The notes under the pieces are model-generated. The model did not search any database and was not told where the DNA came from. It was given only the letters and a program-made list of their open reading frames with translations. Positions 1,546 through 63,604 of a stretch of DNA of 64,000 nucleotides are shown piece after piece. The stretch comes from Octopus bimaculoides. Lineage: Eukaryota. Made by a program: the position numbers and the translations under genes. Positions within the stretch are counted from its first letter, which is position 1; every line of letters begins with the position of its first letter. The DNA lies in the NCBI RefSeq assembly GCF_001194135.2, contig NC_068989.1, forward strand, positions 43,481,959 through 43,545,958, read 5' to 3'.

Positions 1546-4500
1546 NNNNNNNNNNAATCGACAAATCACTCCCCAATTTACTTAGGCGGCACATAACTTT
1601 TGGGAGAGCCATTAAAGTCAATAACTCCCAGTTAGGAAATTGATGGAAGCGCCATACTTGATCTAGTTTTATTTCTGTTCAAATAAAGATATAAATAATC
1701 GTTCAAGTATTTTAAACCAGGATTCATAAGATTGAGGAGACAAAAACTTTGGTCTGTAAGAAATTCTTTCAACTATTACAGTGATTCCAGATAACACCCT
1801 CCAATAATCACAAGGCTTGGAATTGGTGTGAGGAGGTAGGGAGTCTGAAAGGATGAAAGGCAAGATCGACCTCGGTGCAATTTGAGCTCAAAACTTTAAT
1901 ACAGACGAAATGCCGCTAAGCATTTTGTCCGGCGTGCTAACGATTCTGCCAGCTAGCCCTGAATTCAAGATAATAACGAAGTCAAGAACATTGGATTATA
2001 ATAGAACCAGGGGGAATGACTATGCATATCGCATATGGAGTTATTTCCCTTGTTTTGTTGTTTTTTTGGCATAGTTTTTTGATTTTTTTTGTTTTTTTTT
2101 GTTATTTCAAAAATTACGATAACCAATGTGCCTTCCAAGGTTGTAACGTGTGTTCTATGAAAAGAATTCGTTTCTTTTTTTTTTATTATTTATAGCAAAT
2201 CAAGTGGTCAGATAGAAGGTTCGAAATTTTCTAGCGTGGTTGGAATGTTTGTAAAGAAATGTATGAAAGATGAAATCTAAATACGTGTATAAACAGCAGT
2301 AGAAAGGGTTACTGCTACTGAGAAGGAAGTATCTAGAAGACTATTGAAATTACGCTAATAAATATAGGATGGAAAAAGCCCAACTGACACACGCTGCAAA
2401 CAAGAAGTTCGATGACTTTGCCAAAGGAATTCACAAACCAGAGAGAACTGAAAGCAAAGGCAATAAAAGCAAACGGTGGTGAAATAATTGACCTCCAAGT
2501 TAAATATTCAACATGTTTTCTGCAAAACCTAGCGTTTATAACTCGTTCGTTTCCCGTCTCCTTTTCGATGGGTTGGACAAGAACTTTGAGTCATTCTTTT
2601 ACGGCAGATAACTTTCCAGTCACTAACTCTTGTTTTCTAACTAAGGGCTTTGCAGTTTGTCTTCTTCAAAAGAACAGAGTTGGTGGACGATTTTGTGACA
2701 GGACATGCCAACATCGTTTTCTTTTTCTTTTTTTCTCGCAATTCTTTCATGATGTTGAATGTAAGCACTCAGAGATGCACTCGCGTGCGCACACAACTGG
2801 GTTCTGTATAGTTCCTATCTACAAATTCCACTAACAAGGAATTGGTCAGCTAAAGGCTATATGATAAAAAAGACCCCAATGAGGATAGTGTTGCTCTGCA
2901 TCGACAAGATGTATTATGTAGTAAAATCAACAAAGAGCACAGTGCACTTGCCATGAAGAGTGGAGAATCCAACGTTTCAGACAGTCCTACTAAGGCTATA
3001 GAAGACATGTGCGCAAGGTGTTGCATAGTAAGATAGAACTTGAAACCACAGCCATGCCTACATACTGATAATATGATATGGGATGCAGCAAAAAGAAAAA
3101 AACCTCCCAGTTTCATCATCCTTGGCCATGTAACATATGGGAGCTTTTTCTGATACACCTTGTATTATAAATTAACGGCTAATATTTTCATACAAGGCTT
3201 GAGTCTCGCTAGTAAGTCTGTTGTTCTTGTTTGAGGTTCAGTTCTTATAATGTTTAACTCATCATTTAATGACCACTTTCCTATGCCTGCATTAAGTCAG
3301 ATGGAGTTTATTTGAAGCAGGTTTTCTATTGCCAACCCTTCTTGTTGCCAACCCTCACTTCTTTCCTAGCAAGGCAGTATTTTCCTATGGCTATACATCT
3401 TCTCACAAAATATTAGAAATGGATGACATTGCTTGTAAGACTATGATACTTGTTTACAGCTATCATGCAACGTCAAAACAAGTTAACAAAACACACACAC
3501 ACACACACATCATCAACATTTAGCGTCCATTCTCCATGCTTGCATGTGTTGGGTAAGAGTTGGCAAACTAGAGGGTAGCACCAAGCTCAATTGTTTGTTT
3601 TGGCATGGTTTCTACAGGCTTCTTTCAGTTTCCAACATCAACCAAATCCACTTAGAAAGGCTTTAGTCAACCCAGGACTATAGTAGAAGACACTAACCCA
3701 AGGTGCTGTGCAGTAGGACTGCATCCAGAACCAGGTGGTTGGGAAACAAACTTCTTACCGCTCAACCATGCCTACAACTCAATATATTGATTTCATTTCA
3801 AATTTTAGCACAAGGTCAACAATTACGTGGAAAGGGTAAATCAATTACATCAACCCCCAGTACTCAACTGATACTTATTTAATCCACTCCGAAAAGATGA
3901 AAAGCAAAGTCAACCTTAGTGGTATATCGTTCATCTTTACGTGTTGGGTTCAAACTCCACCAAGAATTTTGCCTGACGTGCTAGCAAATCTGCCAACTCA
4001 CCACCTTTGCAACTCAATATGTAAAAAGCTAACTCCCCTGAGATTTTATTACGACTATCAGTGAAAGCCTGTGAATACTGTCTTTACTGCTAAATTATTA
4101 GAAGTGTTTAGTTTCGTTTAGGCAAACTCAAACAAGCAAAGTTACAAGCTTTTTCAGGAACACATCAGAAATTACTAAGATTTGAACTCCTGACTACAGT
4201 ACTTCCACATAGGGTGAAAGTGCTTTGTTTTTGTATAATGTAGCATTTCTGCATACTGGAATTTTGTTTCTTCGTAAAAGGATCTGCCTGTCTATTCTTA
4301 CATGTGTTTGTTGTCCTTTCACTGAAAATTTGCCTGAAACTAACCAATTCTAGCATCTATGAATCCGGTGCACCACTAAAATCATGTATAGTCTGCCATT
4401 GATACTTTATTTTTTCGATGCTGAGATTTTATAATTTCATCCATTTTTCTAAGGAGAGATAAACTTTGAACACAATCTGCACAGCCAAATACCCTTCTAA

Positions 4501-9736: not shown

Positions 9737-10950
9737 TGCAAGTTGGTACAAAAGTAAATATGCTTGCATGTATTTACTTTACATCCAAGCATATCTAGTG
9801 TATGCAAGTCTGCACAGTCTTTAGATGCATATATGCATGTCTTGGTTTTTATGTGCATGGTAAATTCTGTATGGTGCACAGCTTAGATCTATATTTTCAT
9901 GCAGGTTGTGTGCGTGTGTGTACGCACATGTATGTACTTATGTGAATGCATACATGTACATATGAATTCTTAGATGTTCATATGAATGCTTGCTTAGATA
10001 CATGCTTATGTGTATGTAGATATATGTATATGTGGGTCTATTTGCTAATTGGATTACTTCTAGGCTGCTGCTTGTATTGGCACTGAGGTGAAGAATTACT
10101 TTTTCCTTTTTTTCATTTTTATTCCTTCACAAACACAACCCAATACCAAAAACACATCACAAAGAAAGAAAGACAACGAGAAAGAGGAAGAAAGAAAGGA
10201 GAGAAAAAGAAAGAAGATATCATATTCCAACAATTAACCCATTGAAAGAAAAGCCAACCTATGTTTAATTAAATTAGGTTTTTGGACTGAAATTTATTAT
10301 ACAAAATATGATTTTAAACTTTATTAGTTAGCCATTTGTCTTATCATGTTAAGAGTTATTGCACTAAAATCTCCCATAAACCTTAAAATATTTTGATAAT
10401 TTAAACATAATGGCAGTATATATTCTTGTCAGAAAAATATGGTCTCAAATGGGTTAAGCTGTATCATTTTTACAATCAAGTCACCTATCTGATGTCTTAA
10501 TGTAGCTGTTTCTCCTCTTCTTTCTCTTCCTCCTCCACATTCTTCCTCCACCTCGATTCCTCATTACATCACAGGCTCAGTTCATCAGTAACAATACAGA
10601 CAATAATCACCTCCACCACTTTCCTCTATAGCACCATCAGTTGTGGGTTGGTCCATTGGTTTCATTTATTTCAACTGCAGTTGAAGTAAGAGGCAAAGAG
10701 AAAGAGAAAGCATGGGAGATTGAGACAGTAACCAGGAGGGATACAGAGGTAGTGAGGGAGTAAAGGGAGGATGAGTAAGAGTAAGAAGAGAGATGGGGTG
10801 AGAGATAGTAAGTAAGGGAGTAAGAGGGAGTGAGTAAAGAAACAATGCAAGACAGAAGAAGCAAGAAATATTGATATTTCAAAACAGTTCAATAATTTTC
10901 TGCTGTGACCATCACCATTCTATCTGGATGGATGGATGGTTGAAATGCAA

Positions 10951-11175
10951 CTACTGTTGCTGTGAGGCTGTATTCCTGTTTTTACGATGTGGTTCTATTT
11001 CACGCAGACAATTGGCTTTACAGTTCGGACATGCTCCCAAGTCCATCAGGTGGACAACATTTGGATGCCAGGCACAGGTCTGTCGTACTCGGCCTTGAAT
11101 GTTGTAACCACACACAGGACACAAGACACGCTTCGGACTCCGGTTACATATACATCCGGGAAATTCATTGGCTGC
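10951..11175 (-). CDS. Terminal coding exon (phase 0) of a small Cys/His-rich, probably zinc-binding protein, CG13380-like uncharacterised family
   Basis: Pyrimidine-rich acceptor ttttcttctcttttcttAG at 11177-11176, then an open frame to TAG at 10951-10953: AANEFPGCICNRSPKRVLCPVCGYNIQGRVRQTCAWHPNVVHLMDLGACPNCKANCLREIEPHRKNRNTASQQQ*. The motif CxC-x8-CxxC-x5-GRxRxxCxxHP-x4-LMD-x3-CPxC matches my recollection of CG13380-like proteins (not database-verified). Confidence 0.85.
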   Translation of the reverse strand, partial: AANEFPGCICNRSPKRVLCPVCGYNIQGRVRQTCAWHPNVVHLMDLGACPNCKANCLREIEPHRKNRNTASQQQ

Positions 11176-12799
11176 CTAAGAAAAGAGAAGAAAAGAAAAA
11201 TCTCATAAATGTTTATTCATATTTATTAGATTTATGTTTATTAGGAAGAAGGCATATTTTAAAATAACGTTTCCTCACATGTGGGTGGTTATATAGAGCA
11301 TCTGTCAGTCAAACTTCACCATGTGTCTGCACATGTATGCTCAGGCCTGGACAAGATTTTTGAAAAATGGCAGTTCCCCATACATGCAAATCCCACCTCA
11401 CCATACCACTGATGTTTGATCTTTTACGCATTCAGATTACTCAGTCAAATGTAATGCTTATTCATTCACATCATTTTGGATTAATCGTGCACTATCTTGT
11501 AGCTTCCAGCGCTGGCAGAATAGTTAGCACACCGGGCAAAATGCTTAGCAGCATTTCATCCATTTGTATGTTCTGAACTCAAATTCTGCTGAGGTCAACT
11601 TGGCCTTTCATTGATAAAATAAGTACCAGTTGAGCACTGCCAACATTTGAAACATTTGAAACCATTATTACAATGAGAGTAGGGATGTGGCCAGGTTAGG
11701 CCAGTTTGGTTATACAACAGGTAGAAAATTTTAACCAGATATGGCTGGTTTAAATGCGTTTTAACGCATTAAGTTTTGTTCCATTAGAAGAGCCAAGATA
11801 TTTTTACATTCCCCAGTATTGGTATTTATTTGAATGAAAGCCGTTTTCTCCTGACTTCGCCTAAATTTAAAAAAGAAATATTCTTCAACAGAAACGACCT
11901 TATTACAATTTTAAAACAAGTAGTATTTATTTGATCATACCAGAAAGGTCAAGTTGACCTCGGCAGGATTTGGAAAGTTGGAGCAAAAAGTATGAGGCAT
12001 ACTAACCAACATTCTAACGACTGCCTATGTTGAATATGTAAAAGCATTGTTATTAATTTAGAAATAATATTTCGGTATTTCAAATCCTGTCTGATACTCT
12101 GTATACATCCAGGAGCAAGATGATAATGACTGCTGATTCAAAAAGAATGTTGTGTAGCTGAAGGATTCAGGCAAGTGCATAGAGGCTCCCTAGTTAGTAT
12201 TCGAGAGTAGGAGGAGGTATTACTCAGTGGTAGTCACCAACAAACAAGATTGTCATCACAGAGACCCTCCACAATCATCATCAACCAATAGGTCATCAAC
12301 GGATATACCCACCACCATCACNNNNNNNNNNNNNNNNNNNNNNNNNNNNNNNNNNNNNNNNNNNNNNNNNNNNNNNNNNNNNNNNNNNNNNNNGCAAGTG
12401 CATAGAGGCTCCCTAGTTAGTATTCGAGAGTAGGAGGAGGTATTACTCAGTGGTAGTCACCAACAAACAAGATTGTCATCACAGAGACCCTCCACAATCA
12501 TCATCAACCAATAGGTCATCAACGGATATACCCACCACCATCACAACCATCAAGATATGCCTCTCCCTCATACCCACACACTCCCATCACCAACAGATAA
12601 TCTGGTTAATCAGTTTTGCTAGTAATATTCCACCACAAATATATCAGTCAGAGGTGTATGCTGTCCTATTTGAATTGTAATATGTCTCTTAAGATGAAAT
12701 TACAGCAATCATCTGCTTAATGGTACCTCCTTGAAACATATTTCTTTTTTTCAAACTGGATCACAAAGCATATAAGGCTATAAATAACGATGTATAATG

Positions 12800-14323: not shown

Positions 14324-14694
14324 CTCTCTCTCTCTCTCAGCATGNNNNNNNNNNNNNNNNNNNNNNNNNNNNNNNNNNNNNNNNNNNNNNNNNNNNNNNN
14401 NNNNNNNNNNNNNNNNNNNNNNNNNNNNNNNNNNNNNNNNNNNNNNNNNNNNNNNNNNNNNNNNNNNNNNNNNNNNNNNNNNNNNNNNNNNNNNNNNNNN
14501 NNNNNNNNNNNNNNNNNNNNNNNNNNNNNNNNNNNNNNNNNNNNNNNNNNNNNNNNNNNNNNNNNNNNNNNNNNNNNNNNNNNNNNNNNNNNNNNNNNNN
14601 NNNNNNNNNNNNNNNNNNNNNNNNNNNNNNNNNNNNNNNNNNNNNNNNNNNNNNNNNNNNNNNNNNNNNNNNNNNNNNNNNNNNNNNNNNNNNN

Positions 14695-23090: not shown

Positions 23091-23370
23091 TCCATTGAGT
23101 TATTACCACCCTTTGTGTAACAGAAAACACAGATCACAGGTACAATGAAAATAAGAATAACAATAAAATAAGGGATATCCAAGTAAATTCATCTCAGACA
23201 TACAGAGCAGTTATATTAAAATCTTGTATATTTACTTCCAAGAATTCATGCAAGAGCAGTCCTCTAGGAAATCATACTGGAAGTCATGTTTTAATACTAT
23301 TAATTAGAAGTATTAGTAGCAACCATAGTATATATCTGATACTTTATTTTTCTCAAAATACAATATATAG

Positions 23371-24012
23371 GTGCAGGCATGGCTGTGTGGTAAGAAGTTT
23401 GCTTCCCAACTACATGATTCCAGGTTCAGTCCCACAGTGTGACATCTTGAGCAAGTGACTTCTATTAAAGCCTCATGTTGACCAAAGCTTTGTGAGTAGA
23501 TTTGGTAGACAGAAACTGAAAGGCGGCGAGCTGGCAGAAACGTTAGCACGCCGGGCAAAATGCTTAGCGGTATTTCGTCTACCGTTACATTCTGAGTTCA
23601 AATTCCGCCGAGGTCGACTTTGCCTTTCATCCTTTCGGAGTTGATAAATTAAGTACCAGTTACGCACTGGGGTCGATGTAATCAACTTAATCCCTTTGTC
23701 TGTCCTTGTATGTCCCCTCTATGTTTAGCCCCTTGTGGGTAATGAAGAAATAAGAAACTGAAAGAACCCTGTCGTTTGTGTGTATATGTATGTGTGTGTG
23801 TGTGTGTGTCTGCGTTTGTCCCCCACTGCCAACTGACAACCAGTCTTGGTGTGTTTATGTCCCCATAACTTAGTATTCCTGTAAAAGACTGATAGAATAA
23901 TAAGTACCAGGTTTAACAAGCAAATGAGTATTGGGGTCGATTAGTTGGAATAAAATTCCTCAAGGCGGTGCCCCAGCATGGCCGCAGTCTAATGACTGAA
24001 ACAAGTAAAAGA
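23371..24012 (+). mobile_element. tRNA-derived SINE family A with a family B SINE nested at 23520-23752
   Basis: Head gcaggcatggctgtgtggtaagaagtttgcttcccaac and tail ...gactgaaacaagtaaaaga. The nested B copy is flanked by agaaactgaaag duplicates. Many further A copies, e.g. 421-565, 27870-28250(-), 31030-31352(-), 31780-32172, 34575-35065(-), 35325-35668, 45320-45625, 48940-49135(-), 49995-50358(-), 62530-63115(-). Confidence 0.85.
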
Positions 24013-25859: not shown

Positions 25860-27481
25860 TAGGGATACAACTTTTTAATTTTCCTCAAAAACAATTTCCT
25901 GTATCATATTTAGATGAGTTTTAATGCACAAGTAACTAAAGTGAATTCACTTTTGAGCTATCTTTAAAAGGTTCACTCATGAATCCACATTTGCATTCTT
26001 ATGCAAAACTTGTTTGAATAAGGGTATGGTTGCATAGCACTCTTGGCTTTCAATAAATTCTTAGCATTTATAAGACTTCAGTGGTGATTAGACTGTATTG
26101 CTGAGTTATCATCCTTAGTCATAAAGCAAATAATCAAGTTCTTCCACTTTCACCCTTCTTGTTTCTGTTTCAGTATTAGTTCTGCATGACTTCTAGCAGC
26201 ATGTCATTCAAGAAAAGCTTCAAAGTTGTTCACAAGAACAAGGAGAAATGGAGAAATTTGTTGCAGTTCCAGTCCCATTCATCTAGCCAGCAAGAAGCCG
26301 AATATCACTCAAAAAGTAGATTGTTGGTCGGTACCAGTTTCTTGGAAAATCAATTAAAGGCAGAAAGGAGAGTGGCAGAATTATCAAGAGAGAGGACACT
26401 ACTGTGGAGAGATAAACTTAATTTTCCAATCATTTCCAAGAAAGCAATACGGTCCAAGCTCGAAAGTGTGCTTCGTTTGTATGACAAATGTGCCAAGAAA
26501 GGAGAATTTGAATCATTAGAAGAACTGTTCGGTATCACCAAAGTCCATGGTGAATGGCTCAATGCTGATGACAAAAAACTGTACTGCATCCAACTCCAAA
26601 GCAAGGGCAAAGTGGGCTATTCAACAGGCAAAGCTGCAAGCAAACACACTATCTATCCTTCCAAGAGAAGATGTTCTTATGCTGAAGCCACCCATTCTTT
26701 ATCAAACCCAACAGCCTTGGATACTGACGGTGACTCTGAAGAGATTGACAAATACAATTATGCTGAAGATGACAAAGTTGATCAAAATGATAGTGATAGT
26801 AATGGCACCTATTCCTCTACAAGAAGGCACAACAAATCTGCAATTGGTGTGGAACAAACACATCTACCAACAAAACTGAGAAAATCTGCAAACAGTTGTC
26901 AGAGGAAGGCACTGATATTCCAGCTCATAGTCAGCGAAGCATTTACAAGGCACTCTTCAAGGAAACTGGTGAAATGAAGAATCACTTGATCAATACGCTA
27001 CGCAATCAGAAATGGAGCCTGCATTGCAATGGTAAACATATTGACAGAAATGAATATCAAGTGGTTGCCATAAAGAATGGAACAAGTGAAATCAAGCTGG
27101 CTGCTCTGAAGCTGTATGATGGTAAGGCTGAAACCATTGCAGAAGGATTGAAAAGTGTCTTGATTTTCATTGCCGCCGAGCAAAAGCTTATCAGAATATG
27201 ATAAAGGCGGCGAGCTGGCAGAAACATTGCCCGGCCGGGCGAAATGCTTAGCGGTATTTCGTCTGCCGTTACATTCTGAGTTCAAATTCTGCCGAGGTCG
27301 ACTTTGCCTTTCATCCTTTCGGGGTCGATAAATTAAGTACCAGTTACGCATTGGGGTCGATGTGATCGACTTAATCCCTTTGTCTTCCTTGTTTGTCCTC
27401 TCTATGTTTAGCCCCTTGTGGGCAATAAAGAAATAAGAATATGATACAGGACTATGAAGTTGCAAAAAAGTTGTATCCCTA
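25860..27481 (+). mobile_element. Internally deleted hAT transposon (hATm-like) with transposase pseudogene
   Basis: Perfect 17-bp TIR TAGGGATACAACTTTTT. 8-bp TSD GTCAACAT (25852-25859) versus GTCTACAT (27482-27489). ORFs 26186-26977 and 26896-27201 are frameshifted parts of one transposase. WSLHCNGK looks like a decayed LHxDGK first catalytic motif, and the C-terminal half is missing. Confidence 0.85.
27204..27435 (+). mobile_element. tRNA-derived SINE family B inserted in the hAT element
   Basis: aaggcggcgagctggcagaa...gttcaaattc...gaaataag with 11-bp TSD AGAATATGATA (27193-27203 and 27436-27446). Confidence 0.9.
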
Positions 27482-28054: not shown

Positions 28055-28096
<42 letters not shown>

Positions 28097-31000
28097 GATG
28101 GGCTTCTTTCAGTTTCCATCAACCAAATACACTCACAAGGCTTTGGTCAGCCCGAGGCTATAGTATAAGACACTTGCCTGAGGTGCCACGCAGTGGGTCT
28201 GAACCAGGGACCATATGGTTTGGAAACAAACTTCTTATTACTCCTGCACCTGTCTTAGGGGAGATTTGTCCTACACACATGTATTTATATACACACACAC
28301 ACACATGTAGAACAAAAATCCCCTAGGCCATTATATATATATATATATATGTATATGTATATATATATATAAATCAAGTGAGATCGTAACCATGGCCAAT
28401 GCCAGTGCCGCATAACCAGCCCATTTAAAAGTACCCTTCAATCATCAGATAATATGCTGTGCTTGAGAAGACCTGTTGAGTCAAGTGAAAACGTAGTTGT
28501 GGCCGATGCCAGTGCCACGTGACTGGCACACGTACCAGTGGCATGTAAAAAGCACCATTTGAGTATGTCAATGCCAGTGCCACCTGAATGGCTCCAGTGC
28601 CAGAGGCACATAAAAAGCACCCACTACACTCTCAGAGTAGTTGACATTAGGAAGGGCATCCAGCTGTAGAAACCTTGCCAGATCAGATTGGAGCCTGGTA
28701 CAGCCTCTTGGCTTGCCAGTCCTCTGTCAAACCAGCCAACCCATGCCAGCTTGGAAAGTGGATGTTAGATGATGATGATGATGACATATATATAAATCAC
28801 CATTGTTGTTTTAAAGTTCACTTTAAAAGGGGAGAGAGAGAGAGGGAAGATTACCTTCAGTTTCCATCTACTAAATCTACTCACGTGTCTTTTGGGCTAC
28901 AGAAGACACCCAAGTAGTCATGCAGTGGGACTAAACCTGAATTTAAGTGGTTGAGAAGTAAACTCTTTAACCACACAGCCACACATGCACCTAAAGTATT
29001 CAGGGATGGAGAATTAACATGATAAATAAGTGAGAAAAAAAGCATTGAAGACAATTGCAATGTCTTTAACCCTTTAGCATTTCAACTGGCCACATCCTGC
29101 CAAAATATTCTGTTTTATGTTCAAACTGGCTAGATCTGGTTTCCCACACCAACCCTACAATATCATTCTAAAACATTAACAGTTACCTCATCAAAAGATG
29201 ATGCAAGATTAATTCAAAACAACGAGAGTAAATAAGCATTACTTTTAACAGAATAATGTGAATAGTAAAGGGTCAATCAGAGGTCTACTGAATCAGGGCC
29301 AGCCCAAGGTGAAACAACTAGATTCTGTTAAATTATTTCATTCAAGTGTTCTATTTCCATCACATTATTGTTCTTTCGTAAAAGGAAACAAACCAAATAA
29401 CAATCATATGAAGTGCTTTAACACTTTGTCCAAAGCATTTTCAGAAGTTTGTCCAAAATGTCCATGCGTATTTTTAGACTTTTAGTTAGCACTTGTTTCG
29501 TGCATTCTGAATAATATGAAACTTTCTTTTCATAAGTCCCAAGTTACTCTGATGGTTGAAAAGAAGAAAAAAAAAAATTGAGAATGTTCAGTAAATTGCA
29601 GGACAGGCAACGGGTTAAAAAATACTTAGCTAATTAATTAATCCTAGTCTGAAAATAAAGATTAATCAACAGAGAAGTGATGGGGAGACCAAATAGATTC
29701 ATTGAGAATCATTTCTTTATTCCAAAGTGTACACGTATTTAACAACTCTAATGATAAATCTGTAATAATTACTCATTTTTAATTACATAAACACACTTAA
29801 GTTGACTGGTTATTAAATCTCTCACTACTTCTAACCAACACATTATGTCATTGGCATGCACACACACACAATTTCCATTGTACATTAGAATATTCTGTGA
29901 ATAGTACTAGTGTATTACATTACAAAGAGTAATTAAATCCTAGAAATCTTCTCAGTATCAGACTTAAACCTTTTCAGGCAAGTTCTCTGCTACTGTGCAC
30001 CAATACCATGATATCTATGCAACCACCAAAAAACATAAGGTGCCTGTGAATTTTTTTTTTTTTTTCCTTGTCTCATTTGTTGATTATTTTCATGGCAACA
30101 AAGCAGGATCTATGGCTTTTTACGGGGTCTCTGAAAAGGATGGCAAGGCAGAAACTACTCATAAATAAAAGATAAGGAAAATGATTTAGCTAGATGATGA
30201 GTTCTGAATACATTAAGAAAAGGTTAAAAAGGTAAAGACTCCCATCAGTCAGGAATGGCCATGGGATTGCACCTAGAAAGTTACCCTCCAAGGCACAAGT
30301 CCAGGCAAAGTTGTTTATGAAAGACCAGTTGCCTATGCATACAAGTCTCCCCTCTCCACACTACTGATGTTATCCAAGGGAAAGGTGAAGGCCGATACAG
30401 CTCGGCACCAATGATGTCACAACTCATTTCTACAGCTGAGTGAACTGGAGCAACGTGAAATAAAGTGTTTTGCTCAAGAACACAATACAAAATCCAGTCC
30501 GGGAATCAAACTACCTCATGATTGTGAGCACAACACTAACCTCTGAGCCATGGGATTAGACCTATTAAATTAATACATTATGAAAAATAATGACGAATCC
30601 TCCTATACTATTCCTAAAGGGAAAAATAATTTGCATTCAATGTTGTTATAATAGGAATCATCATACCCAGATAGTGAGTTCATTCTCAAATTGAAGAGCT
30701 GATCTGAATGTTTACAACAGAGTGGAATCTGTTTTTAGCACCCAAGTACCATATGGCAGGGTTAAATCATATCACAGGATTACTAGAGTATCCACATGGG
30801 ACATCTCAGAAACTGCTGCAGCTTAGGAAGTCAGTGTTTTTAACTGCAATTTTTTTTTTTCATTTCAGCATATTTCTTTTTCAACAATATATCTGAATAT
30901 TAAGAGCAGCACTCATCAATATCTCATATAACAGGATAAACTATGAGTTACATGAAAACCCAATTAAATCTAATACAAATACATTCAAACAAACAAAATA

Positions 31001-32589
31001 TACAATTGCCCAAAATATCCAAATAATATTGTTTGTTTCAGTCATTTGACTGCAGCCATACTGGGGACCTGTGTATAAAAGTTTTAGTCATTTTGAGTCT
31101 GGTGCTTATTTGACCAGTTTCTTTTGCCAAACTGCAAATTACAGGGATGTAGTTGTAAAGTAGTAGTAGAGGACAAACACAAAGACACACTCACGCATAA
31201 TAGATTTCCTTCAGTTTACAACTACCAAATTCACTCAAGGATTTGGTCAACCCAGGGTTATAATAGAAGGCACTTGCCCAATGTGCCATGCAGTGGGATT
31301 GAACCTGGAACCATGCGGTTTGGAAGCAAACTTCTTATGACACAGCCATGCCTGTAGAGAATAAATATTTATCTTCATTAACTTTTAGTGTCAAAGGTAG
31401 CAAGCTGGATAACACGCCAGCCAAAATGCTTAACAGCATTTCATCTGTCTTTACATTCTCAGTTCAAATTCCGCCAAGGTCAACTTTACCTTTCATCCTT
31501 TCAGGGTCAGTAAAATAGTACCAGTTGAACACTGGGGTCAGTGTAAACAACTTAACCCCTTGCTTGAAATTGCTGGCCTTGTTCCAATATTTGAAACCAA
31601 CATTACAATAAATACTTCTTTCGTGTTCACAGGTCTGTCGTTATGATATTCAAGTAACAATAAGGAATCGATAGCTCCTAGTAAATTACTAGAACTGTAT
31701 GTCCCAAACAACCCATGCCAGGATGGAAAATGGATGTAAAATGATAATGACGACTGCAATAAATGCAAATAAAATAGGTGCAAGCATGGCTGTAAGGTAA
31801 GAAGTTTGCTTCCTAATCATATGGTTCCAGTTCAGTCCCACTGCATGGAACCTTGGACAAGTGTTTTCTACTATAGCCTCAGGCCAAACAAAGCCTTGAG
31901 TAGATTTAGCAGACAGAAACTGAAAGAAGCCTATCATATATGTATGGGTGTGTGTGTCTCTTTATGTTAGCGTTTGTCCCCCACCACTGCTTGACAACCG
32001 GTGTTGGTGCGTTTATGTTCCCATAACTTAGCAGTTTGGCAAAGAGGACCAATAGTATAAGTACCAGGATTTAAGAAAAAAATATTAAGTACTAGGGTCA
32101 ATTCGTTCAACAAAAAATTCTTCAAGGTGGTTCCCCAGCATGGTCAGTCTAATGACAAACAAGTAAAAGATAAAACAATTATCACTAATGTATCTAAGAG
32201 TACAAGTACACTCTCTAGAGTTTCTCTTCTACAAATAAAAGCTTATACCTCAGGGTAAAAGTAATCTAGATTATAAAGATAAGCTTTCAACAAGTGATGT
32301 CTGCTAACTAGAGATATCTGTATTAATATCAACTTCATTAACTTGGCTACTTGATGAGATTTAGCCATATAAATCCAAGTGATTATATATATTGAGCCAA
32401 TTAAATATTATGCCAAATTAGAAAACTATAGAAACTGAATTAAATACTAATTGTTGTTTAGCCCCCGGCCAGACCTGATCAAGTAGATCTATGACAAATA
32501 GGTGTTACCATCATGACCATCCTATCATTTTTGCATATCAAAGATTACACTGTCCAATATCTTTCCATAAAGTAGAGCCAGAAGTGCTC

Positions 32590-33144: not shown

Positions 33145-33715
33145 NNNNNNNNNNNNNNNNNNNNNNNNNNNNNNNNNNNNNNNNNNNNNNNNNNNNNNNN
33201 NNNNNNNNNNNNNNNNNNNNNNNNNNNNNNNNNNNNNNNNNNNNNNNNNNNNNNNNNNNNNNNNNNNNNNNNNNNNNNNNNNNNNNNNNNNNNNNNNNNN
33301 NNNNNNNNNNNNNNNNNNNNNNNNNNNNNNNNNNNNNNNNNNNNNNNNNNNNNNNNNNNNNNNNNNNNNNNNNNNNNNNNNNNNNNNNNNNNNNNNNNNN
33401 NNNNNNNNNNNNNNNNNNNNNNNNNNNNNNNNNNNNNNNNNNNNNNNNNNNNNNNNNNNNNNNNNNNNNNNNNNNNNNNNNNNNNNNNNNNNNNNNNNNN
33501 NNNNNNNNNNNNNNNNNNNNNNNNNNNNNNNNNNNNNNNNNNNNNNNNNNNNNNNNNNNNNNNNNNNNNNNNNNNNNNNNNNNNNNNNNNNNNNNNNNNN
33601 NNNNNNNNNNNNNNNNNNNNNNNNNNNNNNNNNNNNNNNNNNNNNNNNNNNNNNNNNNNNNNNNNNTGAAACAAGTAAAAGAGAGTAAAAGAGTATATAT
33701 ATATATATATATATA

Positions 33716-34162: not shown

Positions 34163-37099
34163 AATATATATATATTTATATATATATATATATATATATT
34201 GGTGTGTGCGCGCATGCGTGCATGCATGCATGCTTGCGTGCATGTGTGTGTGTGTGTGTTACACACACAAATACATATATGGAATAGGTGAGAGAAACAA
34301 TCTAAATGCCAGACAAGGTATTTCACAAAGAATTCTCACAATGTGTTTTGCTGCAGACGATGCAAAACCTGCTACAACAACTGACAACATGCAACTACTA
34401 CTTGCTCGCATTATCACAAAGATATGCGAAAGAACACAAATATGTGTACACAATCAAGTGCACACAGATGTAAACACAAAGTTTTCAAAAATGAACATGT
34501 TAACAGATGGTTAAGTGATTATAAATTTTCCTTTTTATTTATTGTGACTATAAAATATAGTATCTTTTATTTTTTACTTGTTTCAGTCATTAAGCTGTGG
34601 CCAAGCTGGAGCACCACCTTAAAGAAACTTAGTTGAATGAATCGACCCCACTATCTCTTTTATAAGCTTGGCACTTTATTGGTCTCTTTGTCAAAATGCT
34701 AAGTTACAAGGATGTAAACACACCAACACCAATTGCGAAGCTGTGATGAAGAACAAACACACACACAAAATCATAGCCAAAAGTATGGAACATAGGTCTG
34801 AAAATTAAAATTTTTTATATTAAATGCCCAAAGTTATATCTAATTTGCAATATATTATTACTACTTACAGTAATATGGTGGGTATAACAATTTTAATTTA
34901 AAAAAAAAAAAATTTCAAACTTTTGTACACAGCTTATGTATGTTTGTATATGATGGGCTTCTTTCAGTTTCTGTCTACCAAATCCACTCACAAGGCTTTG
35001 GTCAGACTCAAGCAGTGGGACTGAACGTGGAACCACGTTGTTGGGAAGCAAACTTCTTAATACACAGCCATACCAGCAAACTGTGAAAAAGAAAATTAAT
35101 TTTTAGAAAAAAATGGTAGTATGAAGTAGTGATTATTTAGACAGAATCAATAGAATAGACAGACAGATGATCAAACTCACTCAAACTATGATCATCTTAT
35201 CCCAGACCATGTTTATCTAATGGATGTTATTTGCTTCTTATTCACAGGCGGTCCAGCAAACTATTTCTTACAGCATCGATCCATAAATTGCTTTAAAAAA
35301 ATTGGATATCAAACAAAATGAACAAATGGTTGTGTGGTAAGAAGCTTGCTTCCCAACCACATGGTTCCAGGTTCAGTCTCACTGTGCAGCACCTTGGGAA
35401 AGTGTCTCCTACTATAGCTTCAGGCCGACCAAAGCCTTGTGAATAGATCTGGTAGACAGAAACTGAAAGAAGCCCATCGTATATATATGTATGTATTTGT
35501 GTGTCTGTGTTTGTCCCCCTACCATTGCTTGACAACCAATGTTGGTGTGTTTATGTCCCCTTAACTTAACAGTTTGTCAAAAGTGATGGATAGAATAAGT
35601 ACTAGACTTACAAAGAATAAGTCATAGGGTCAATTTGTTCAACTAAAAGGCAGTGCTCCAGCATGGCCAGGCACTAAAAGAGTGACTCTTCCCAGACACA
35701 ATAAAATCTTCGATATTGTTTTGCTTTTATGTTAATCTCTACTCTAAATGGAATCGGTAAATTTATAAGGTAGTTTCTATTGTGGACTATGAACTAATTC
35801 ATGGTTAGCAAATTTGTCAAGTATTTTGTCAATTCTTTTTATTCCTCCGAGAAAAATATATTGAATTAAGAAAGGAATTTAAACAACAAAATGTTGATAG
35901 AAGTTTTTGATAGTTACAAGAAATAATCTTTTCCACTGTAAGTACAAAGCCTTAAATTTTAGTGGGTAGAGCTAGTTGATTGTTACGTTGATCCCAGTGT
36001 TCAATTGGCACTTATTTTATCAATCCCAAAAGGATGAATGGTAAAGATGACCTTGACAGAATTTGAACTGAGAATGTAAAGATGAACAAAACACCACAAA
36101 GCAGTTCGTCCAGCACAATAACAATTCTGCCAGCTTGCAACCTTAATTACTGTACAATTAATATTTGACTATGTATTTACTCTGTGAATGAAAAAAAAAA
36201 TCCTCACAAATTTGCAAACAAAGTATTACTAATGTGTAATGGAATTGTCTTAAAAAGGATTTACCACAACAAATTTCCTTCATGAAACCACAACCAAGAT
36301 GCATCTCACATTGCTAAGATAAGAATTTCCTCCACTTAACCTCTCCCCCCCCCATCACCACCACCACCATTAGCTTTGGTAGATCCTCAATTTCATGTGC
36401 ATCTGCCAAATAATGTGTGTAGTTAAGTGGTTATTATTCACTATTGAGGTATGGAGGTCAATAAAACATCTGATATGGTCTGTTGTCCAGTGGACAGCAA
36501 TACCTATCCTATGTTGAGCAATAATAGCATAAGAGGAATGTGTCCATAAATCTCCTTTTTGGCTTTCTACTTCCACTATGAGAAGTCCTCATGAATATTG
36601 ACAGAAAAACACCTTAGAAGTATAGTAGACTATGAGAAGTTTATTATACAAAATTCATTTTGGCTTTAAAAATGAATTTGAAGTAAAAAAATAAAATTGC
36701 TGATAACATTTTAATAATTCCTGAAAATCTAAATGAAATGGCAAAATTTGTAAACTGTCTATCAGCTTATAGATGTTTATCAACAAGATAACATGAAATT
36801 TGTTTGGCTAGTTTTGTATACTTTGTAAATTTCAAGAGTAGAAAATATTAAAAGCAATTCAGAAATTCCAAAAATCAGAATTAATAGGACTTATTTAACC
36901 AGATACTTGGAGAGTTTCATAGAAATAGTCAATATCTTCTATTATCTAGATTACTTAATCAGCAGTGGAGATGGTAGTCTGAAAGCATAGTAAGCAGAGG
37001 TGAAAAATAAACCCCATTAATTATGGAACAAAAGGATTCACTCTAAGATTGTATGTTGCTTGTGTATAAAGTGAATAGGAGCAAAAAGAAAAAAAATAT

Positions 37100-40225: not shown

Positions 40226-40519
40226 TTAAATGATACATAGATGGCTATTTTAATATAATGGTGTTACAGTTGCATAAATGTTTCAATTACATTGGTGCAG
40301 GCATGGCTGTGTGGTAAGAAGTTTGCTTCATAACTACACAGTTCCAGGTTCAGTCCCACTGTGTAACACCTTCAGCAAGAGTCCTCTACTATAGCCTCAG
40401 GCCAACCAAAGCCTTGTGAGTGGATTTGGTAGACAGAAACTGAAAGAAGCCCATTGTATATATATGTCTGCCACCACCACCTAACAAGCTGTGTAGGTGT
40501 TTACATCCCCATAACTTAG

Positions 40520-44541: not shown

Positions 44542-46612
44542 TTAATCAGAGTTAACTCAAGGCTATGCAATAAAACTGAGATTAATTGAAACTGTAATAA
44601 ACAGCCAAGTAAGCTATGTTGTAAGAAGAAGTTACATAGAAAGGAGTCACCTGTGAAATTACAGAAGAATTTGAGGTTAGTGAATACTAAGAGAGCAGTG
44701 TAGCTAGGAGTTCCATTTGCTCAGTTTGGAGGAACGATTAATGCAACTGGTTTTCACAGAAGACTCGTTTAGATACAGGTACACCTGTGTGAAAAGTTTG
44801 CTTGCCAAACAAATAGTCTCAAGTTCAGTCCAACTGAATGACACCTTGGGCAACTGTCATTTACTATAGCCCTCAGCCAACCAAAGCCTCATGAGAAGAT
44901 TTTGATAGATAGAAACTGAAACCTATATNNNNNNNNNNNNNNNNNNNNNNNNNNNNNNNNNNNNNNNNNNNNNNNNNNNNNNNNNNNNNNNNNNNNNNNN
45001 NNNNNNNNNNNNNNNNNNNNNNNNNNNNNNNNNNNNNNNNNNNNNNNNNNNNNNNNNNNNNNNNNNNNNNNNNNNNNNNNNNNNNNNNNNNNNNNNNNNN
45101 NNNNNNNNNNNNNNNNNNNNNNNNNNNNNNNNNNNNNNNNNNNNNNNNNNNNNNNNNNNNNNNNNNNNNNNNNNNNNNNNNNNNNNNNNNNNNNNNNNNN
45201 NNNNNNNNNNNNNNNNNNNNNNNNNNNNNNNNNNNNNNNNNNNNNNNNNNNNNNNNNNNNNNNNNNNNNNNNNNNNNNNNNNNNNNNNNNNNNNNNNNNN
45301 NNNNNNNNNNNNNNNNNNATTCTACTATAGCCTCGGGCCGATCAAAGCCTTGTGAGTGGATTTGGTACACGGAAACTGAAAGAAGCCCGTCGTATATATA
45401 TGTATATATATATGTATGTATGTTTGTGTGTCTGTGTTTGTTCCCCCATAATCGCTTGACAACCAATGGTGGTGTGTTTACGTCCCCGTAACTTAGCGGT
45501 TCGGCAAAAGAGGCTGATAGAATAAGTACTAGGCTTCCAAAGAATAAGTCCTGGGGTCGATTTGCTCGACTAAAAGCAGTGCTCCAGCATGGCCGCAGTC
45601 AAATGACAAACAAGTAAAAGAGTAAAAGTGTGTGTGTGTGCGTGCGTGCGTGTGTGTGTCTCCCCCTTTGCTTTGACTATTCTACAGGATTGCATGATTG
45701 ATTTACATCTCATGGCTGTTTATCCAAGTTCCATGATAACCATCTCCAGCTGTGGGTCTTTTGATGACTGGCTACAGTTCTTAAAAGGTAGCAACAACAG
45801 TGAATATAACTATACAGGCAGTTGGAGAATTGCACCTGCTACAGCTTATACTAAACCTCTGCACCTTCACTTGCAGTAACACCAAATTTGCAATGAGTTT
45901 ATAGACACTACTTGATAAGTCACCATTTGGCCATTAACAGAATACTATGCCATTAAATTTTTTAAACAACAAATATACTTTTTTTTTCCTTGATGAGGTG
46001 GGTTTCTCAATATAAAAAAAAACTATTAATGGACGAAAGTAAAATAGTCGACAATATAGTGCCACCTTAATACTAAAACCATCCAACATATCACTGTTAT
46101 CACTGAAGTTGAATTCCTTGAATATTTTGATTACATTCTTAATTAATGTGAGCAATTTACTCTTCAAGTGAAATGACTTAACAGAAAAGAGAACTAATAA
46201 TAGAAAACACCTGAGAAACACAACTGCATTTCTGCAAAATTATGAAATTTTGACTGTTCTGGTAATGGTGAAGTTATGAAGTTCCCTGAAAATTTGCATT
46301 ATACAGATGGATATCTGCAGAGATGTTTGTACTAAAATACAAACATCTCCACAGTATAGCTGTCACTTTAAGTCCCATACCTCATAGAACAGGAAAATGG
46401 TAGTTTTGAGAGTTATTCTCTTTTTTTTTTTTTTTTTTTTTTTGCTATTCATACATTTCATACAATGAGATGATGAAGGGAATTTTTTTGCATCCCTCCT
46501 CCACCCCACAACTTCCTCAATCTTTGCCCTTTTCCTTCCCATGCAACTTCAAGTGACAGCTACTCCAAAACTCCACTTTTAATAAGAACACTAACACAGT
46601 AGCAACCCTTAC

Positions 46613-46649: not shown

Positions 46650-47390
46650 CTACAAACATGCATCTTTTCTAACCTACTCATTTACATAATTTTGTATCAA
46701 GTAGTTCAATTGCAGAACTANNNNNNNNNNNNNNNNNNNNNNNNNNNNNNNNNNNNNNNNNNNNNNNNNNNNNNNNNNNNNNNNNNNNNNNNNNNNNNNN
46801 NNNNNNNNNNNNNNNNNNNNNNNNNNNNNNNNNNNNNNNNNNNNNNNNNNNNNNNNNNNNNNNNNNNNNNNNNNNNNNNNNNNNNNNNNNNNNNNNNNNN
46901 NNNNNNNNNNNNNNNNNNNNNNNNNNNNNNNNNNNNNNNNNNNNNNNNNNNNNNNNNNNNNNNNNNNNNNNNNNNNNNNNNNNNNNNNNNNNNNNNNNNN
47001 NNNNNNNNNNNNNNNNNNNNNNNNNNNNNNNNNNNNNNNNNNNNNNNNNNNNNNNNNNNNNNNNNNNNNNNNNNNNNNNNNNNNNNNNNNNNNNNNNNNN
47101 NNNNNNNNNNNNNNNNNNNNNNNNNNNNNNNNNNNNNNNNNNNNNNNNNNNNNNNNNNNNNNNNNNNNNNNNNNNNNNNNNNNNNNNNNNNNNNNNNNNN
47201 NNNNNNNNNNNNNNNNNNNNNNNNNNNNNNNNNNNNNNNNNNNNNNNNNNNNNNNNNNNNNNNNNNNNNNNNNNNNNNNNNNNNNNNNNNNNNNNNNNNN
47301 NNNNNNNNNNNNNNNNNNNNNNNNNNNNNNNNNNNNNNNNNNNNNNNNNNNNNNNNNNNNNNNNNNNNNNNNNNNNNNNAGGATTTTCAC

Positions 47391-48056: not shown

Positions 48057-48645
48057 TCTATAATAAACTACTTATATGAGAGATGTTTGTTTACAACTAG
48101 TGTGATGTTGAGACACACACACAAAGCACTTTTGTGAAAACATACCTAATCCATGGGGGAAATATTGCTGCACTTCAAAACAGGTGAAGGTTGGCAACAA
48201 GAAAGGGATCCAGTCACAAAATCTGCCTCAGCCAATTCTGTCTGACCCACGCAAGCATGGAAAAGTGGACGTTAATATAATGATCATTCTTTTACTTCAT
48301 TTTCCATGCTGGTGCTAGCATGGATATGTCACAATATATGGAACACATACATCTCTTAGCTAATGAAGTTTTTGATGATAACAATAACTCTAAGCTTAAA
48401 AAGTCATAAAGTTGGCTAAATCTAAACATCTATTGTTTTACACTTGTAATTCTAATTTTCTGGTTCTGTTCATTTTATCAGATACAAAATAGGTGGTTTG
48501 GTGTGGCAATAAGGTTGCTTCACAATCACATGGTTCCAGGCTCAGACCCACTACATGGCACCTTGGGCAAGTGATTTCTATAGCGTCAGGCCAACCAAAG
48601 CCTTGGAAGTGAATGTGATAGACTGAAACTGAAAGAAGCCTGTCA

Positions 48646-48900
48646 TCTATATATACAAAACTGAGAATGTGTGTCTGTCTGTATGTATGTGTGAATCCCT
48701 AAAACTCAAAAACTACCCAACCGATTTCATTCAAATTTTACACATGCATTACTTAGGGTCCATGGAGTGTCATGCACAAAAAAAATTTCAACTTCTTACC
48801 TAATGCAGGCCTGGACCAATCTTTTAGACTGGTTTAGTATTACATGTCAAAAGTGAATATTGTTTCACTTTTATTCTTTCACTTAATTCTACAGTCCAAT
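48646..48900 (+). mobile_element. Helitron/DINE-like non-autonomous 5' portion
   Basis: A|TCtatatatacaaaactgagaatgtgtgtctgtctgtatg...caaccgatttcattcaaattttacac, a typical HelitronN/DINE-like start. Confidence 0.5.
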
Positions 48901-49519: not shown

Positions 49520-50356
49520 CCCAAGCAATTTAACCCGTCCGTCAGTCCAGTGTCCCATGATGGAGATGCTATTCGATGGCATGGGCCTGCCTCCCTAGGT
49601 GCCAAACCGCAAGCCCACTGACTTTTCAGAGTTAATTTTTGCTCCCATTACCGCTTTGGATCCTTTTAGTGTCATGCCGACCAGGTTGATATGCCTGTGG
49701 CTCAACATTAAGATAGTGACGTCTGTGTATGCAGACACACCCCTCCCACTTCGCATCCTTCATGTTTGGTATTAAAGTGTTGGTCAAGGGACAACCTCTG
49801 CTAGCATGTTGGACACAATACCATTTCTATGTGCTTCTTCTAATTTCTTAACTAGGTTTCCCTCCAACTAATTTCAATTTATTGCTAGAGCCTAACTATA
49901 CCTAACCAATTATACTTTAATTGCTTTCTTTAGGGCATACCAACATCTATTATAATCAGATAGATATCATCATCATCATCATATATATATATACTCTTTA
50001 CTCTTTTACTTGTTTCAGTCATTTGATTGCGGCCATGCTGGAGCATCGCCTTTAGTCGAGCAAATCGACCCTAGGACTTATTCTTTGTAAGCCTAGTACT
50101 TATTCTATCAGCATCAGTTATCAAGTGATGTTGGGGGGTACAAACACAGACACACAAACATATACATACACATATATATACATACATATATACGACGGGC
50201 TTCTTTTCAGTTTCCGTCTACCAAATCCACTCACAAGGCTTTGGTCGGCCCAAGGCTATAGTAGAAGACACTTGCCCAAGGTACCACGCAGTGGGACTGA
50301 ACCCAGAACCATGTCGTTGGTAAGCAAGCTACTTACCACACAGCCACTCCTGCGCC

Positions 50357-50393
<37 letters not shown>

Positions 50394-53971: not shown

Positions 53972-55709
53972 GGTACTACTTAAGGAGAGTGGACCCGACA
54001 CTCGCACCTGCACTAGTCAGTAGATGGACTCACACACATGCACAAGTCAGTGGCACCCACGATGAAGAACACTCCACATGTAAATTATAAATGGGAGTGG
54101 GTGTTGTAGACTCCTATTATACTCTTAAATCTGCTTTTTGCATTTTTTCAGTAACATTCAACTGAGTTGGTATGTACTTTAAATACTGGATCCACAAAGT
54201 TTTCTTTCTGATTCACTTTGAAATGGGATTACTGTGGTTCAACATCCCATTGTATCCACTCCAACAATTAAAATGGATAGTTGCTCCTGGTTTTATACAC
54301 TTTCTGATAAGGGAAAGCAGACTTTCAGAAGAACGATCATTCACAAACACTAAAAGTACTATTTTGTCCTGTACTGTTTGTTTGCCTATCTATCTATCTA
54401 TTTATCTATCTCTCTCTATCTATCTAAGAAAGAAAGAAAGATAAACAGATACATAGATTAGACACAGACAGACAGACATATAGATTAGACAGACAAATAG
54501 ATAGATAGATACATTAGACAGACAGACAGACAGATACATTAGACAGACAGACAGACAGATACATTAGACAGACAGACAGACAGATACATTAGACAGACAG
54601 ACAGACAGATACATTAGACAGACAGACAGACAGATACATTAGACAGACAGACAGNNNNNNNNNNNNNNNNNNNNNNNNNNNNNNNNNNNNNNNNNNNNNN
54701 NNNNNNNNNNNNNNNNNNNNNNNNNNNNNNNNNNNNNNNNNNNNNNNNNNNNNNNNNNNNNNNNNNNNNNNNNNNNNNNNNNNNNNNNNNNNNNNNNNNN
54801 NNNNNNNNNNNNNNNNNNNNNNNNNNNNNNNNNNNNNNNNNNNNNNNNNNNNNNNNNNNNNNNNNNNNNNNNNNNNNNNNNNNNNNNNNNNNNNNNNNNN
54901 NNNNNNNNNNNNNNNNNNNNNNNNNNNNNNNNNNNNNNNNNNNNNNNNNNNNNNNNNNNNNNNNNNNNNNNNNNNNNNNNNNNNNNNNNNNNNNNNNNNN
55001 NNNNNNNNNNNNNNNNNNNNNNNNNNNNNNNNNNNNNNNNNNNNNNNNNNNNNNNNNNNNNNNNNNNNNNNNNNNNNNNNNNNNNNNNNNNNNNNNNNNN
55101 NNNNNNNNNNNNNNNNNNNNNNNNNNNNNNNNNNNNNNNNNNNNNNNNNNNNNNNNNNNNNNNNNNNNNNNNNNNNNNNNNNNNNNNNNNNNNNNNNNNN
55201 NNNNNNNNNNGATACATTAGACCGACAGATGAACAGATAGATTAGACAGACAGACAAATAGATAGATAGATAGATTAGACAGACAGACAGATACATTAGA
55301 CAGACAGACAGACACATTAGACAGACAGATAGATACATTAGACAGACAGATAGATACATTAGACAGACAGATAGATACATTAGACAGACAGATAGATAGA
55401 TACATTAGACAGACAGATAGATACATTAGACAGACAGATAGATACATTAGACAGACAGATAGATACATTAGACAGACAGATAGATACATTAGACAGACAG
55501 ATAGATACATTAGACCGACAGATAGATACATTAGACCGACAGATAGATACATTAGACCGACAGACAAACAGATCCCCTCCCCCCATTAACAGTTTACACA
55601 TTTATACATGTGGAGGCTTATTTTTTTTTACCGCGGTTGCCACGGACTTGCGCGTTCGTCTCCTGACTAGCGCGTGTGCGCGTCGGGTCCACTCTTCTTA
55701 AGCAGTACA
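53972..55709 (-). mobile_element. Merlin (IS1595/ISXO2-like) transposon relic
   Basis: About 120-bp imperfect TIRs starting GGTACT(A/G)CTTAAG.AGAGTGGACCCGAC. 8-bp TSD AAAAAAAC (53964-53971 and 55710-55717). Minus strand 54130-54375 reads DRSSESLLSLIRKCIKPGATIHFNCWSGYNG and, after a frameshift, HFKVNQKENFVDPVFKVHTNSVECY*, matching ISXO2/Merlin DDE motifs. Confidence 0.8.
54470..55565. repeat. Higher-order minisatellite ACATT(AGAC)n(AGAT)m, 21-25-bp units, spanning a gap inside the Merlin relic
   Basis: acattagacagacagacagacagat on the left, acattagacagacagatagat on the right, acattagaccgacagatagat at the far end. Confidence 0.95.
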
Positions 55710-62200: not shown

Positions 62201-63604
62201 TTGTATTTATTAGGAACAAGCGTGGCTTTGTGATGAAAAGCTTGCTTCCTACCCACATGGTTCCAGGTTCAGTCTCATTGAATGTTTTATGTACCTTTCA
62301 GTTCTTACACATTCTCTGTGATGCTGGTCGGTACCATAACATAGTTACAAGGTCATGTGGTTGTGTTCCATTCACCAGACAATTTAAGGACAGGAAACCT
62401 CGTGGGTTCCAACCAGGAACATACTGTTCATTCTCGATACATCCGTAAAGAATATTTTTAAACAATTGTGTGATTTTAAATAACAATAAAAATTATAAAC
62501 GCGAAATAACGATTACTCAGTATATCCCTTTTACTCTTTTACTTGTTTCAGTCATTTGACTGTGGCCATGCTGGAGCACCACTTCAGTAGAGCAAATCGA
62601 TCCCAGGACTTATACTTTGTAAGCCTAGTACTTATTCTATCGGTTCTCTTTTGCCGAACCGTTAAGTTACGGGGACGTAAACACACCACCATCGGTTGTC
62701 AAGCGATGCTGCGGGGACACACACACACACATACATACATATATATANNNNNNNNNNNNNNNNNNNNNNNNNNNNNNNNNNNNNNNNNNNNNNNNNNNNN
62801 NNNNNNNNNNNNNNNNNNNNNNNNNNNNNNNNNNNNNNNNNNNNNNNNNNNNNNNNNNNNNNNNNNNNNNNNNNNNNNNNNNNNNNNNNNNNNNNNNNNN
62901 NNNNNNNNNNNNNNNNNNNNNNNNNNNNNNNNNNNNNNNNNNNNNNNNNNNNNNNNNNNNNNNNNNNNNATACACATATACGACGGGCTTCTTTCAGTTT
63001 CCGTCTCCCAAATCTACTCACAAGGCTTTGTCGGCCCGAGGCTATAGTAGAAGACACTTGCCCAAAGTGCCACGCAGTGGGACTGAACCCAGAACCATGT
63101 GGTTGGTAAGCTACTTTATTTCATAAATATTTGCCATAAAGGCATTACAAAGAGGGGACGAACAAGGACAGACAAACATAAAAGGGATGAAATAGCTCAC
63201 ACATCATTCCTGCGCCTATTCACAAATATGTCAAGAAAATATGGCTATTAACTTAGTATTTAAATAAACCAAGAGTTTGTTGCTATTAAAAGGTTTAAGA
63301 ATATTTTCCGGATCTATTTCAAAACGGGGGCACCAGTATTTTCTTAACGAAACACATTGAAACTTTGGACACTGGTAGAATGTGTCATATAAAACATCTT
63401 TTACTCTTAGTCTTCTTAACAAAAAAACGTACATCGCAAGTTATTCCATGTTAAAGTTGTCGTATTTCTGTAATTTCAACCAATCACTGACGTCTATTCA
63501 GCTGAATAGAGTTACTGCTGTGCGGTCATAAAAATGTTATTCCCTGTGACATATTTCATCCGGTTTAATCGTAATTTATACGTATATATTATTTATATAA
63601 TAAA

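Follow-up and report, generated by a model that had tools for sequence, protein, structure and literature searches.

A two-exon Octopus bimaculoides gene encodes a short protein with a CG13380-type Cys/His domain that could bind two zinc ions

Positions 10951-11175 on the minus strand of a 64,000-nucleotide stretch of Octopus bimaculoides DNA (the whole of which is subsequently called the window) are, as judged from the sequence, the terminal one of two coding exons in a 98-codon cephalopod gene, which lies wholly within the window. The exon carries a CG13380-type Cys/His domain, which according to its substitution pattern is under strong purifying selection. We consider it very probable that such a two-exon gene with its CG13380-type domain, most likely a small rigid binding module, is the whole explanation of what had been noticed in this DNA. 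The gene is already catalogued, as a prediction in public databases, and belongs to an uncharacterised family.

The gene is composed of the following features, given in the direction of transcription.

60235-60306, minus strand: coding exon 1, 72 nt, an exact match to residues 1-24 of protein P0001.
60229-60234, minus strand: splice donor caa/GTAAGT, read from the sequence.
11176-60234, minus strand: single phase-0 intron of 49,059 nt, derived from the exon coordinates.
11176-11200, minus strand: polypyrimidine tract and AG acceptor, tttttcttttcttctcttttcttag, read from the sequence.
10951-11175, minus strand: coding exon 2 (terminal), 74 codons followed by TAG (10953-10951), residues 25-98.
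10993-11154, minus strand: CG13380-type Cys/His domain, residues 32-85, delimited by regular expression, invariant columns, structural model and dN/dS.
10665-10670, minus strand: first candidate polyadenylation signal AATAAA, a pattern match 280 nt past the stop codon.

Translation of exon 2 on the minus strand yields the stop-free peptide AANEFPGCICNRSPKRVLCPVCGYNIQGRVRQTCAWHPNVVHLMDLGACPNCKANCLREIEPHRKNRNTASQQQ, followed by the stop codon. The 74 codons and 8 cysteines named in the original prediction are thus confirmed, and all of its motifs are present as well, namely CxC, CxxC, CxxH and CPxC, which are formed by seven of the cysteines and one histidine, together with GRVR and LMD. The clean acceptor that it described was also found, as a 24-nt pyrimidine tract plus AG can be read directly 5' of the exon (tttttcttttcttctcttttcttag/GCAGCC). 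The TAG that holds the acceptor AG is an in-frame stop and therefore the coding frame starts exactly at 11175. Exon 1 encodes MSKTGNQQYRDFSSNNNAPIYNPQ (24 aa); its ATG at 60306-60304 resides in the context gaaaccATGtcg and is preceded by a stop upstream in the same frame. Classification of 10951-11175 as a terminal exon holds on two counts. First, the exact 98-aa product (24 + 74 aa) was detected by a word-indexed search in UniParc (UPI00078A4A77, designated P0001), of which residues 25-98 are 100% identical to the product of exon 2. Second, the phase-0 two-exon layout is repeated in Octopus vulgaris and Argonauta hians. Both exons are located in the window at a distance of 49 kb, separated by an intron that contains many assembly gaps, microsatellites and SINE-like repeats. 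Pattern matching detected further candidate polyadenylation signals 625-827 nt past the stop codon.

The gene model also corrects parts of the earlier description. The exon had been regarded as the sole unmistakable coding sequence of the host within the 64 kb, but exon 1 of the same gene is present at 60235-60306. The absence of exon 2 from the list of open reading frames holds at the default cut-off of 60 aa; at a minimum of 40 aa the list includes a TTG-started piece of 57 aa (10951-11124). The exon is hidden inasmuch as it has no start codon, and for no other reason; in public databases the gene had already been predicted. Nevertheless, reading of the sequence alone sufficed to pick a start-less terminal exon from 64 kb of repeat-rich DNA and to name the family.

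An open frame of this length is by itself not significant, since 108 N-free and stop-free stretches of at least 74 codons exist in the AT-rich window. The Cys/His pattern, for its part, occurs once in the six frames of the whole window. Orthologues were identified in two further cephalopods. The O. vulgaris protein CAI9728332, a member of the P0001 cluster, is 96% identical (94 of 98 residues), and the Argonauta hians orthologue is a protein of 105 aa with 76% identity; both carry the annotation 'hypothetical protein'. Exon layout and junction codon are conserved in Argonauta and O. vulgaris, and the GTAAGT donor is found at the identical codon in both. The intron measures ~59 kb in the O. vulgaris orthologue; its Argonauta counterpart is shorter, at 5.8 kb. 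At the nucleotide level, exon 2 is 96% identical to O. vulgaris and 79% to Argonauta, and exon 1 is 80% conserved in the latter species. When the Argonauta locus was compared with the whole window using blastn and tblastx, exons 1 and 2 were the only unique conserved blocks, and all other shared sequence was dispersed repeat.

Substitution rates were determined relative to Argonauta by the method of Nei and Gojobori:

Residues 32-85, the domain: dN/dS 0.036, dS 1.37.
Residues 1-31, the N-terminus: dN/dS 0.19, dS 1.08.
Whole protein: dN/dS 0.10, dS 1.10.

Hence, the N-terminal ~30 residues are less constrained than the domain. Comparison with O. vulgaris reveals 9 substitutions in exon 2, including 3 replacements, each of which precedes the first cysteine. 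From the first cysteine onward, 6 of 6 substitutions are synonymous. Non-coding and flanking DNA is ~90% identical to O. vulgaris. Because of this selection, and because the two exons are the only unique conserved blocks, we regard the exon as a functional coding exon.

The opposite view, according to which an open frame arose here by chance, or the exon is a pseudo-exon or belongs to a dead gene copy, and no protein is made, could refer to the 108 open stretches of such length in the window, to the fact that no transcript contig carries the exact 98-aa protein, and to a 49-kb intron, which is unusual for a gene of 98 codons. However, this view would have to accommodate a dN/dS of 0.036 over ~1.4 synonymous substitutions per site, domain changes that are all synonymous within Octopus, and conservation of exons, donor, acceptor and phase across three cephalopod genomes. 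Homology within the family moreover reaches E=4e-17. The selection data effectively refute this explanation, whose probability we consider negligible. Derivation of the peptide from a transposon- or virus-encoded protein was considered likewise, as the 64 kb surrounding the exon are rich in dispersed repeats. Yet, the exon is single copy within the window and syntenic with the same exon layout in three species. Transposase, integrase and reverse transcriptase domains are present in 0 of 150 family members, no transposon match was obtained, and the viral structure library BFVD provided no significant match. Since the exon is single copy and syntenic and the proteins are free of mobile-element domains, we conclude that it is not transposon-derived; an origin from a mobile element or virus is extremely improbable.

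The remainder of the window was inspected for additional features. An ATG-started ORF of 263 aa at 26186-26977 (plus strand) is located in the intron, antisense to the gene, and has no match in Pfam. The possibility that it represents a nested gene was rejected: its O. vulgaris counterpart (L005 54049-54836) is frameshifted and divergence is neutral-like. As this syntenic stretch is split into three frames with ~78-88% protein identity, the ORF looks like a decaying relic. No tRNA genes or RNA families were detected in the window by ARAGORN and Rfam. Eighteen gaps account for 4,133 N (e.g. 14345-14694, 33145-33666, 46721-47379 and 54655-55210), and long (CT)n, (TG)n and (TA)n microsatellites are present. 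Most of the listed 'long ORFs' (SLSLSL..., CVCVCV..., runs of X) are artefacts caused by these gaps and microsatellites. A SINE-like dispersed repeat of ~150-240 bp was detected at least 13 times, in both orientations and at 75-94% identity. It often adjoins (TA)n tracts and is also found in Argonauta hians. The copies are:

444-599, 3614-3787, 23363-23521, 28057-28237, 31210-31354, 31759-31946 and 35327-35544: SINE-like copies.
40288-40463, 44785-44921, 45320-45471, 48501-48655, 50110-50365 and 62970-63111: SINE-like copies.
L001 21857-21964: SINE-like copy.

The extent of the family was assessed with HMMER, the cephalopod pair serving as query for an exhaustive search of a library of 1.84 billion proteins. 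This search returned 341 cluster representatives at E<=1e-3, of which 49 fell at E<=1e-10, and the best non-cephalopod match scored E=4.0e-17. Over 45 residues the core pattern reads CxCxR-x6-C-x2-CG-x4-GRxR-x2-C-x2-HP-x4-LxD-x3-CPxC, and the ligand spacing C-x-C-x8-C-x2-C-x11-C-x2-H-x11-C-x2-C is matched exactly by the octopus peptide. A loose regular expression was matched by 122 of 151 sequences and the exact 45-residue form is present in 115 of the 151. In the octopus protein this core, from CxC to CPxC, corresponds to residues 32-76 (11020-11154, minus strand). Among 150 full-length sequences, C32, C34, C43, C46, C58, H61 and C73 are invariant, and C76, R36, G52, R53, L67, D69 and E83 are conserved in at least 90%. 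Family proteins are short (median 137 aa) and in 87 of 116 members the domain is followed by at most 30 aa; in the octopus protein of 98 aa it occupies residues 32-85.

Names of members were obtained from cluster look-ups and from one nematode query. Members whose source could be named in this way belong exclusively to molluscs, insects and nematodes. They comprise bivalves and gastropods (Ruditapes, Magallana, Dreissena, Elysia), Blattella and five ant genera, as well as Plectus, six named Caenorhabditis species plus one unnamed isolate, and strongylids. Thus, the insect and mollusc homologues with the conserved Cys/His spacing that the original prediction had anticipated were indeed found, with nematodes in addition. 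Every named member is labelled 'uncharacterized' or 'hypothetical'. Metagenome contigs that encode family members were uninformative as to taxon. Likeness to CG13380, which had been part of the original prediction, is corroborated by the finding that the cephalopod profile detects P0063 with E=3.3e-10, whose cluster bears the RefSeq name 'uncharacterized protein CG13380 [Formica exsecta]'. BLASTP aligned the octopus protein with P0063 without gaps over 47 residues (45% identity, E=4e-14), whereby all eight ligand positions were matched, and with an oyster member at 52% identity over 61 residues. These similarities support assignment of the octopus protein to the CG13380 family, a link established via the RefSeq name of the ant orthologue rather than via D. 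melanogaster CG13380 itself.

Searches of Pfam with the peptide, 10 long relatives, 73 domain sequences and 150 full-length members returned no family at threshold. Likewise, no recurrent accessory domain was detected by Pfam in the 150 full-length members, one of which (P0055) contains a dsRBD. A search of 8.3 million papers retrieved none that names CG13380 or any of six orthologue identifiers. In the Blattella germanica member the single intron interrupts the domain at about residue 62, just before the invariant Asp (L006 2001-2183 and 6969-7031), whereas the cephalopod intron falls before the domain. Conservation of the intron position across phyla was therefore rejected.

Several short features recur outside the domain. 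QSRLxxK is found near the N-terminus of 12 members (e.g. P0039, P0048 and P0087) and (G/A)RG(K/R)xL in 14 members (e.g. P0005, P0007, P0010 and P0101). Long forms from bivalves have a C-terminal tail …P[KR][KR]AVG…DL… in common, and P0080 and P0147 possess two tandem copies of the domain each. Of 122 members, 28 (P0005, P0028, P0039, P0048, P0052 and P0107 among them) have at least three consecutive Asn residues ahead of the domain; these stem from molluscs and insects and include the octopus and Argonauta proteins. Composition-preserving shuffles gave a mean of 4.6 and a maximum of 11 such members. Other homotriplets are rarer (19 for Ser, 15 for Ala). The octopus triplet, N15-N17, is encoded by exon 1 (60256-60264, minus strand). 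The Asn run may be a conserved short motif or slippage-prone low complexity.

For the domain, a compact three-strand fold is confidently predicted. AlphaFold2, provided with an alignment of 73 sequences, modelled 59 residues with a pLDDT of 88.2, with 35 residues reaching at least 90, and predicted short strands at positions 12-15, 22-27 and 55-57 of the domain. The model computed from the single sequence had a pLDDT of 39 and an N-terminal part of ~30 residues without confident structure. A Foldseek search with the pLDDT-88 model detected nothing significant in the PDB (best E 0.34) or in BFVD (0.21), and TM scores were at most 0.53 across both. The top matches, all of them non-significant, are uniformly zinc ribbons and rubredoxin-like knuckles, i.e. 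the MCM N-terminal ribbon, Rpb12, the rubrerythrin C-terminal domain, the Pirh2 C-terminal domain and an archaeal ribosomal protein. Sequence searches of the PDB with the peptide and the family profile were without significant result as well; the PHD finger of BPTF came closest (E=0.055), with an alignment that covers ligand pairs 1, 2 and 4 and leaves pair 3 unaligned. The commonest weak Pfam matches, all sub-threshold, are RUBY_RBDX (21/73), DZR (21/73) and Zn_ribbon_3 (14/73). As no fold match is significant, the term 'zinc ribbon' denotes a resemblance only.

In keeping with the ligand pattern and the confident model, two Zn2+ ions could plausibly be coordinated by the seven cysteines, including the nearly invariant C76, and the histidine. 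One zinc would be shared, in a zinc-ribbon site, by the rubredoxin-type knuckles C43-P-V-C46-G and C73-P-N-C76, and C32-x-C34 together with C58-x2-H61 would hold the second. With C43/C46/C73/C76 in one site and C32/C34/C58/H61 in the other, the order would therefore be 1,2,5,6 / 3,4,7,8, i.e. a cross-brace. A redox or iron centre, either a rubredoxin-like Fe(Cys)4 site or a thiol-disulfide switch, would fit the two knuckles CPxCG and CPxC. The rubredoxin-like domain of rubrerythrin is also the most frequent weak Pfam match (21/73, best E 9e-4, below threshold), and rubredoxin and rubrerythrin appear among the Foldseek and PDB matches. However, all these matches are sub-threshold, the CxC...CxxH set and the basic surface are foreign to rubredoxin, and, to our knowledge, animal proteins of such shape almost always are zinc sites. 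We therefore consider a redox or iron centre very improbable.

Attached to a variable, probably disordered N-terminal tail, which would supply lineage-specific short motifs, the domain most likely acts as a small rigid two-zinc binding module of ribbon-like type. Reading it as a binding module is suggested by its basic core (mean net charge of the 45 residues across the family +3.7, range -1 to +8) and by the invariant non-ligand residues R36, G52-R53, L67 and D69. Many zinc ribbons bind nucleic acid, and binding of nucleic acid is the reading that we prefer, albeit tentatively; we assign about the same likelihood to a conserved protein partner. R53 and D69 could also form a structural salt bridge rather than belong to a binding surface.

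A protein partner would make the domain an interaction module or adaptor comparable to PHD, RING or MYND domains instead of a nucleic-acid binder, a possibility for which we would likewise claim less than an even chance. A cross-brace scaffold would accord with the order of the ligands and with the weak hit on the PHD finger of BPTF, R53, D69 and L67 could make a peptide-binding groove, and variable, apparently unstructured tails with QSRLxxK, GRGKxL or NNN are typical of adaptor and regulatory proteins. On the other hand, no protein-binding finger family shows significant similarity (among 73 members, only 3 match Pfam PHD at E<1). The domain also has a basic character throughout, and the folds closest to it are ribbons of nucleic-acid machinery. 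Going one step further, the domain might be a structurally distinct two-zinc fold, a ribbon cross-braced by CxC...CxxH, which is confined to protostomes and has one conserved molecular function; we put this forward as a speculative proposal, less probable than not. If true, the function could be e.g. recognition of a specific nucleic-acid structure, and the 98-residue cephalopod protein would be close to a minimal natural version, convenient for studies of structure and binding.

The gene itself is no addition to the catalogue, since predictions of it exist for three cephalopod genomes. What deserves attention is a well-conserved domain of strict spacing for which we found no Pfam model, solved structure or mention in the literature, although many other conserved domains likewise lack an assigned function. 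As orthologues exist in fly and worm, its function is directly testable by standard genetics, and a two-zinc module so small would be an easy structure target.

Finally, the domain may be compared with known Cys/His modules. With PHD fingers, exemplified by BPTF, it shares eight ligands in four pairs, a 'CIC' opening and a 'CPxC' closing. In PHD fingers the third pair is H-x2-C and follows after 4-5 residues, whereas in the octopus domain it is C-x2-H and lies 11 residues past pair 2, resulting in a ligand order C4-C-H-C2 instead of C4-H-C3. Pfam PHD (PF00628) stayed below threshold (E<1 in 3/73 members, best E 0.23) and no PHD structures were among the top Foldseek matches. Assignment as a PHD finger was rejected on the grounds of ligand signature and threshold. 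SWIM fingers have the signature CxCxnCxH. As in the octopus domain, a CxC and a later Cys/His pair could make one metal site, but the later pair of the octopus domain is C-x2-H rather than C-x-H, and the two pairs are separated by a complete CxxC knuckle. For GRF and SWIM fingers alike, resemblance is restricted to the level of pattern, and both are missing from the 25 Pfam families that are weakly matched (E<1) most often; neither assignment is supported.

Zinc ribbons share the pair of CxxC/CPxC(G) knuckles, which in the octopus domain are CPVCG and CPNC, each followed by a strand in the predicted model. MCM, Rpb12, rubrerythrin, Pirh2 and TFIIB gave non-significant Foldseek TM scores of 0.44-0.50, and RUBY_RBDX, DZR, Zn_ribbon_3 and Zn_Ribbon_TF matched weakly in Pfam. 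Unlike zinc ribbons, the octopus domain interleaves a second ligand set, CxC...CxxH, and its conserved GRxR, HP and LxD are without counterpart there. No zinc ribbon match reached the Pfam gathering score or a Foldseek E<0.2, and for this reason the domain cannot be filed as a zinc ribbon. With the CG13380 family, the octopus protein has the ligand pattern, the near-C-terminal position of the domain and the lack of any other domain in common. It differs by an extra non-conserved cysteine (C80) and, like its cephalopod orthologues, by lacking the N-terminal QSRLxxK and (G/A)RG(K/R)xL motifs of other subgroups; few members of the family are as short as the cephalopod protein with its 98 aa.
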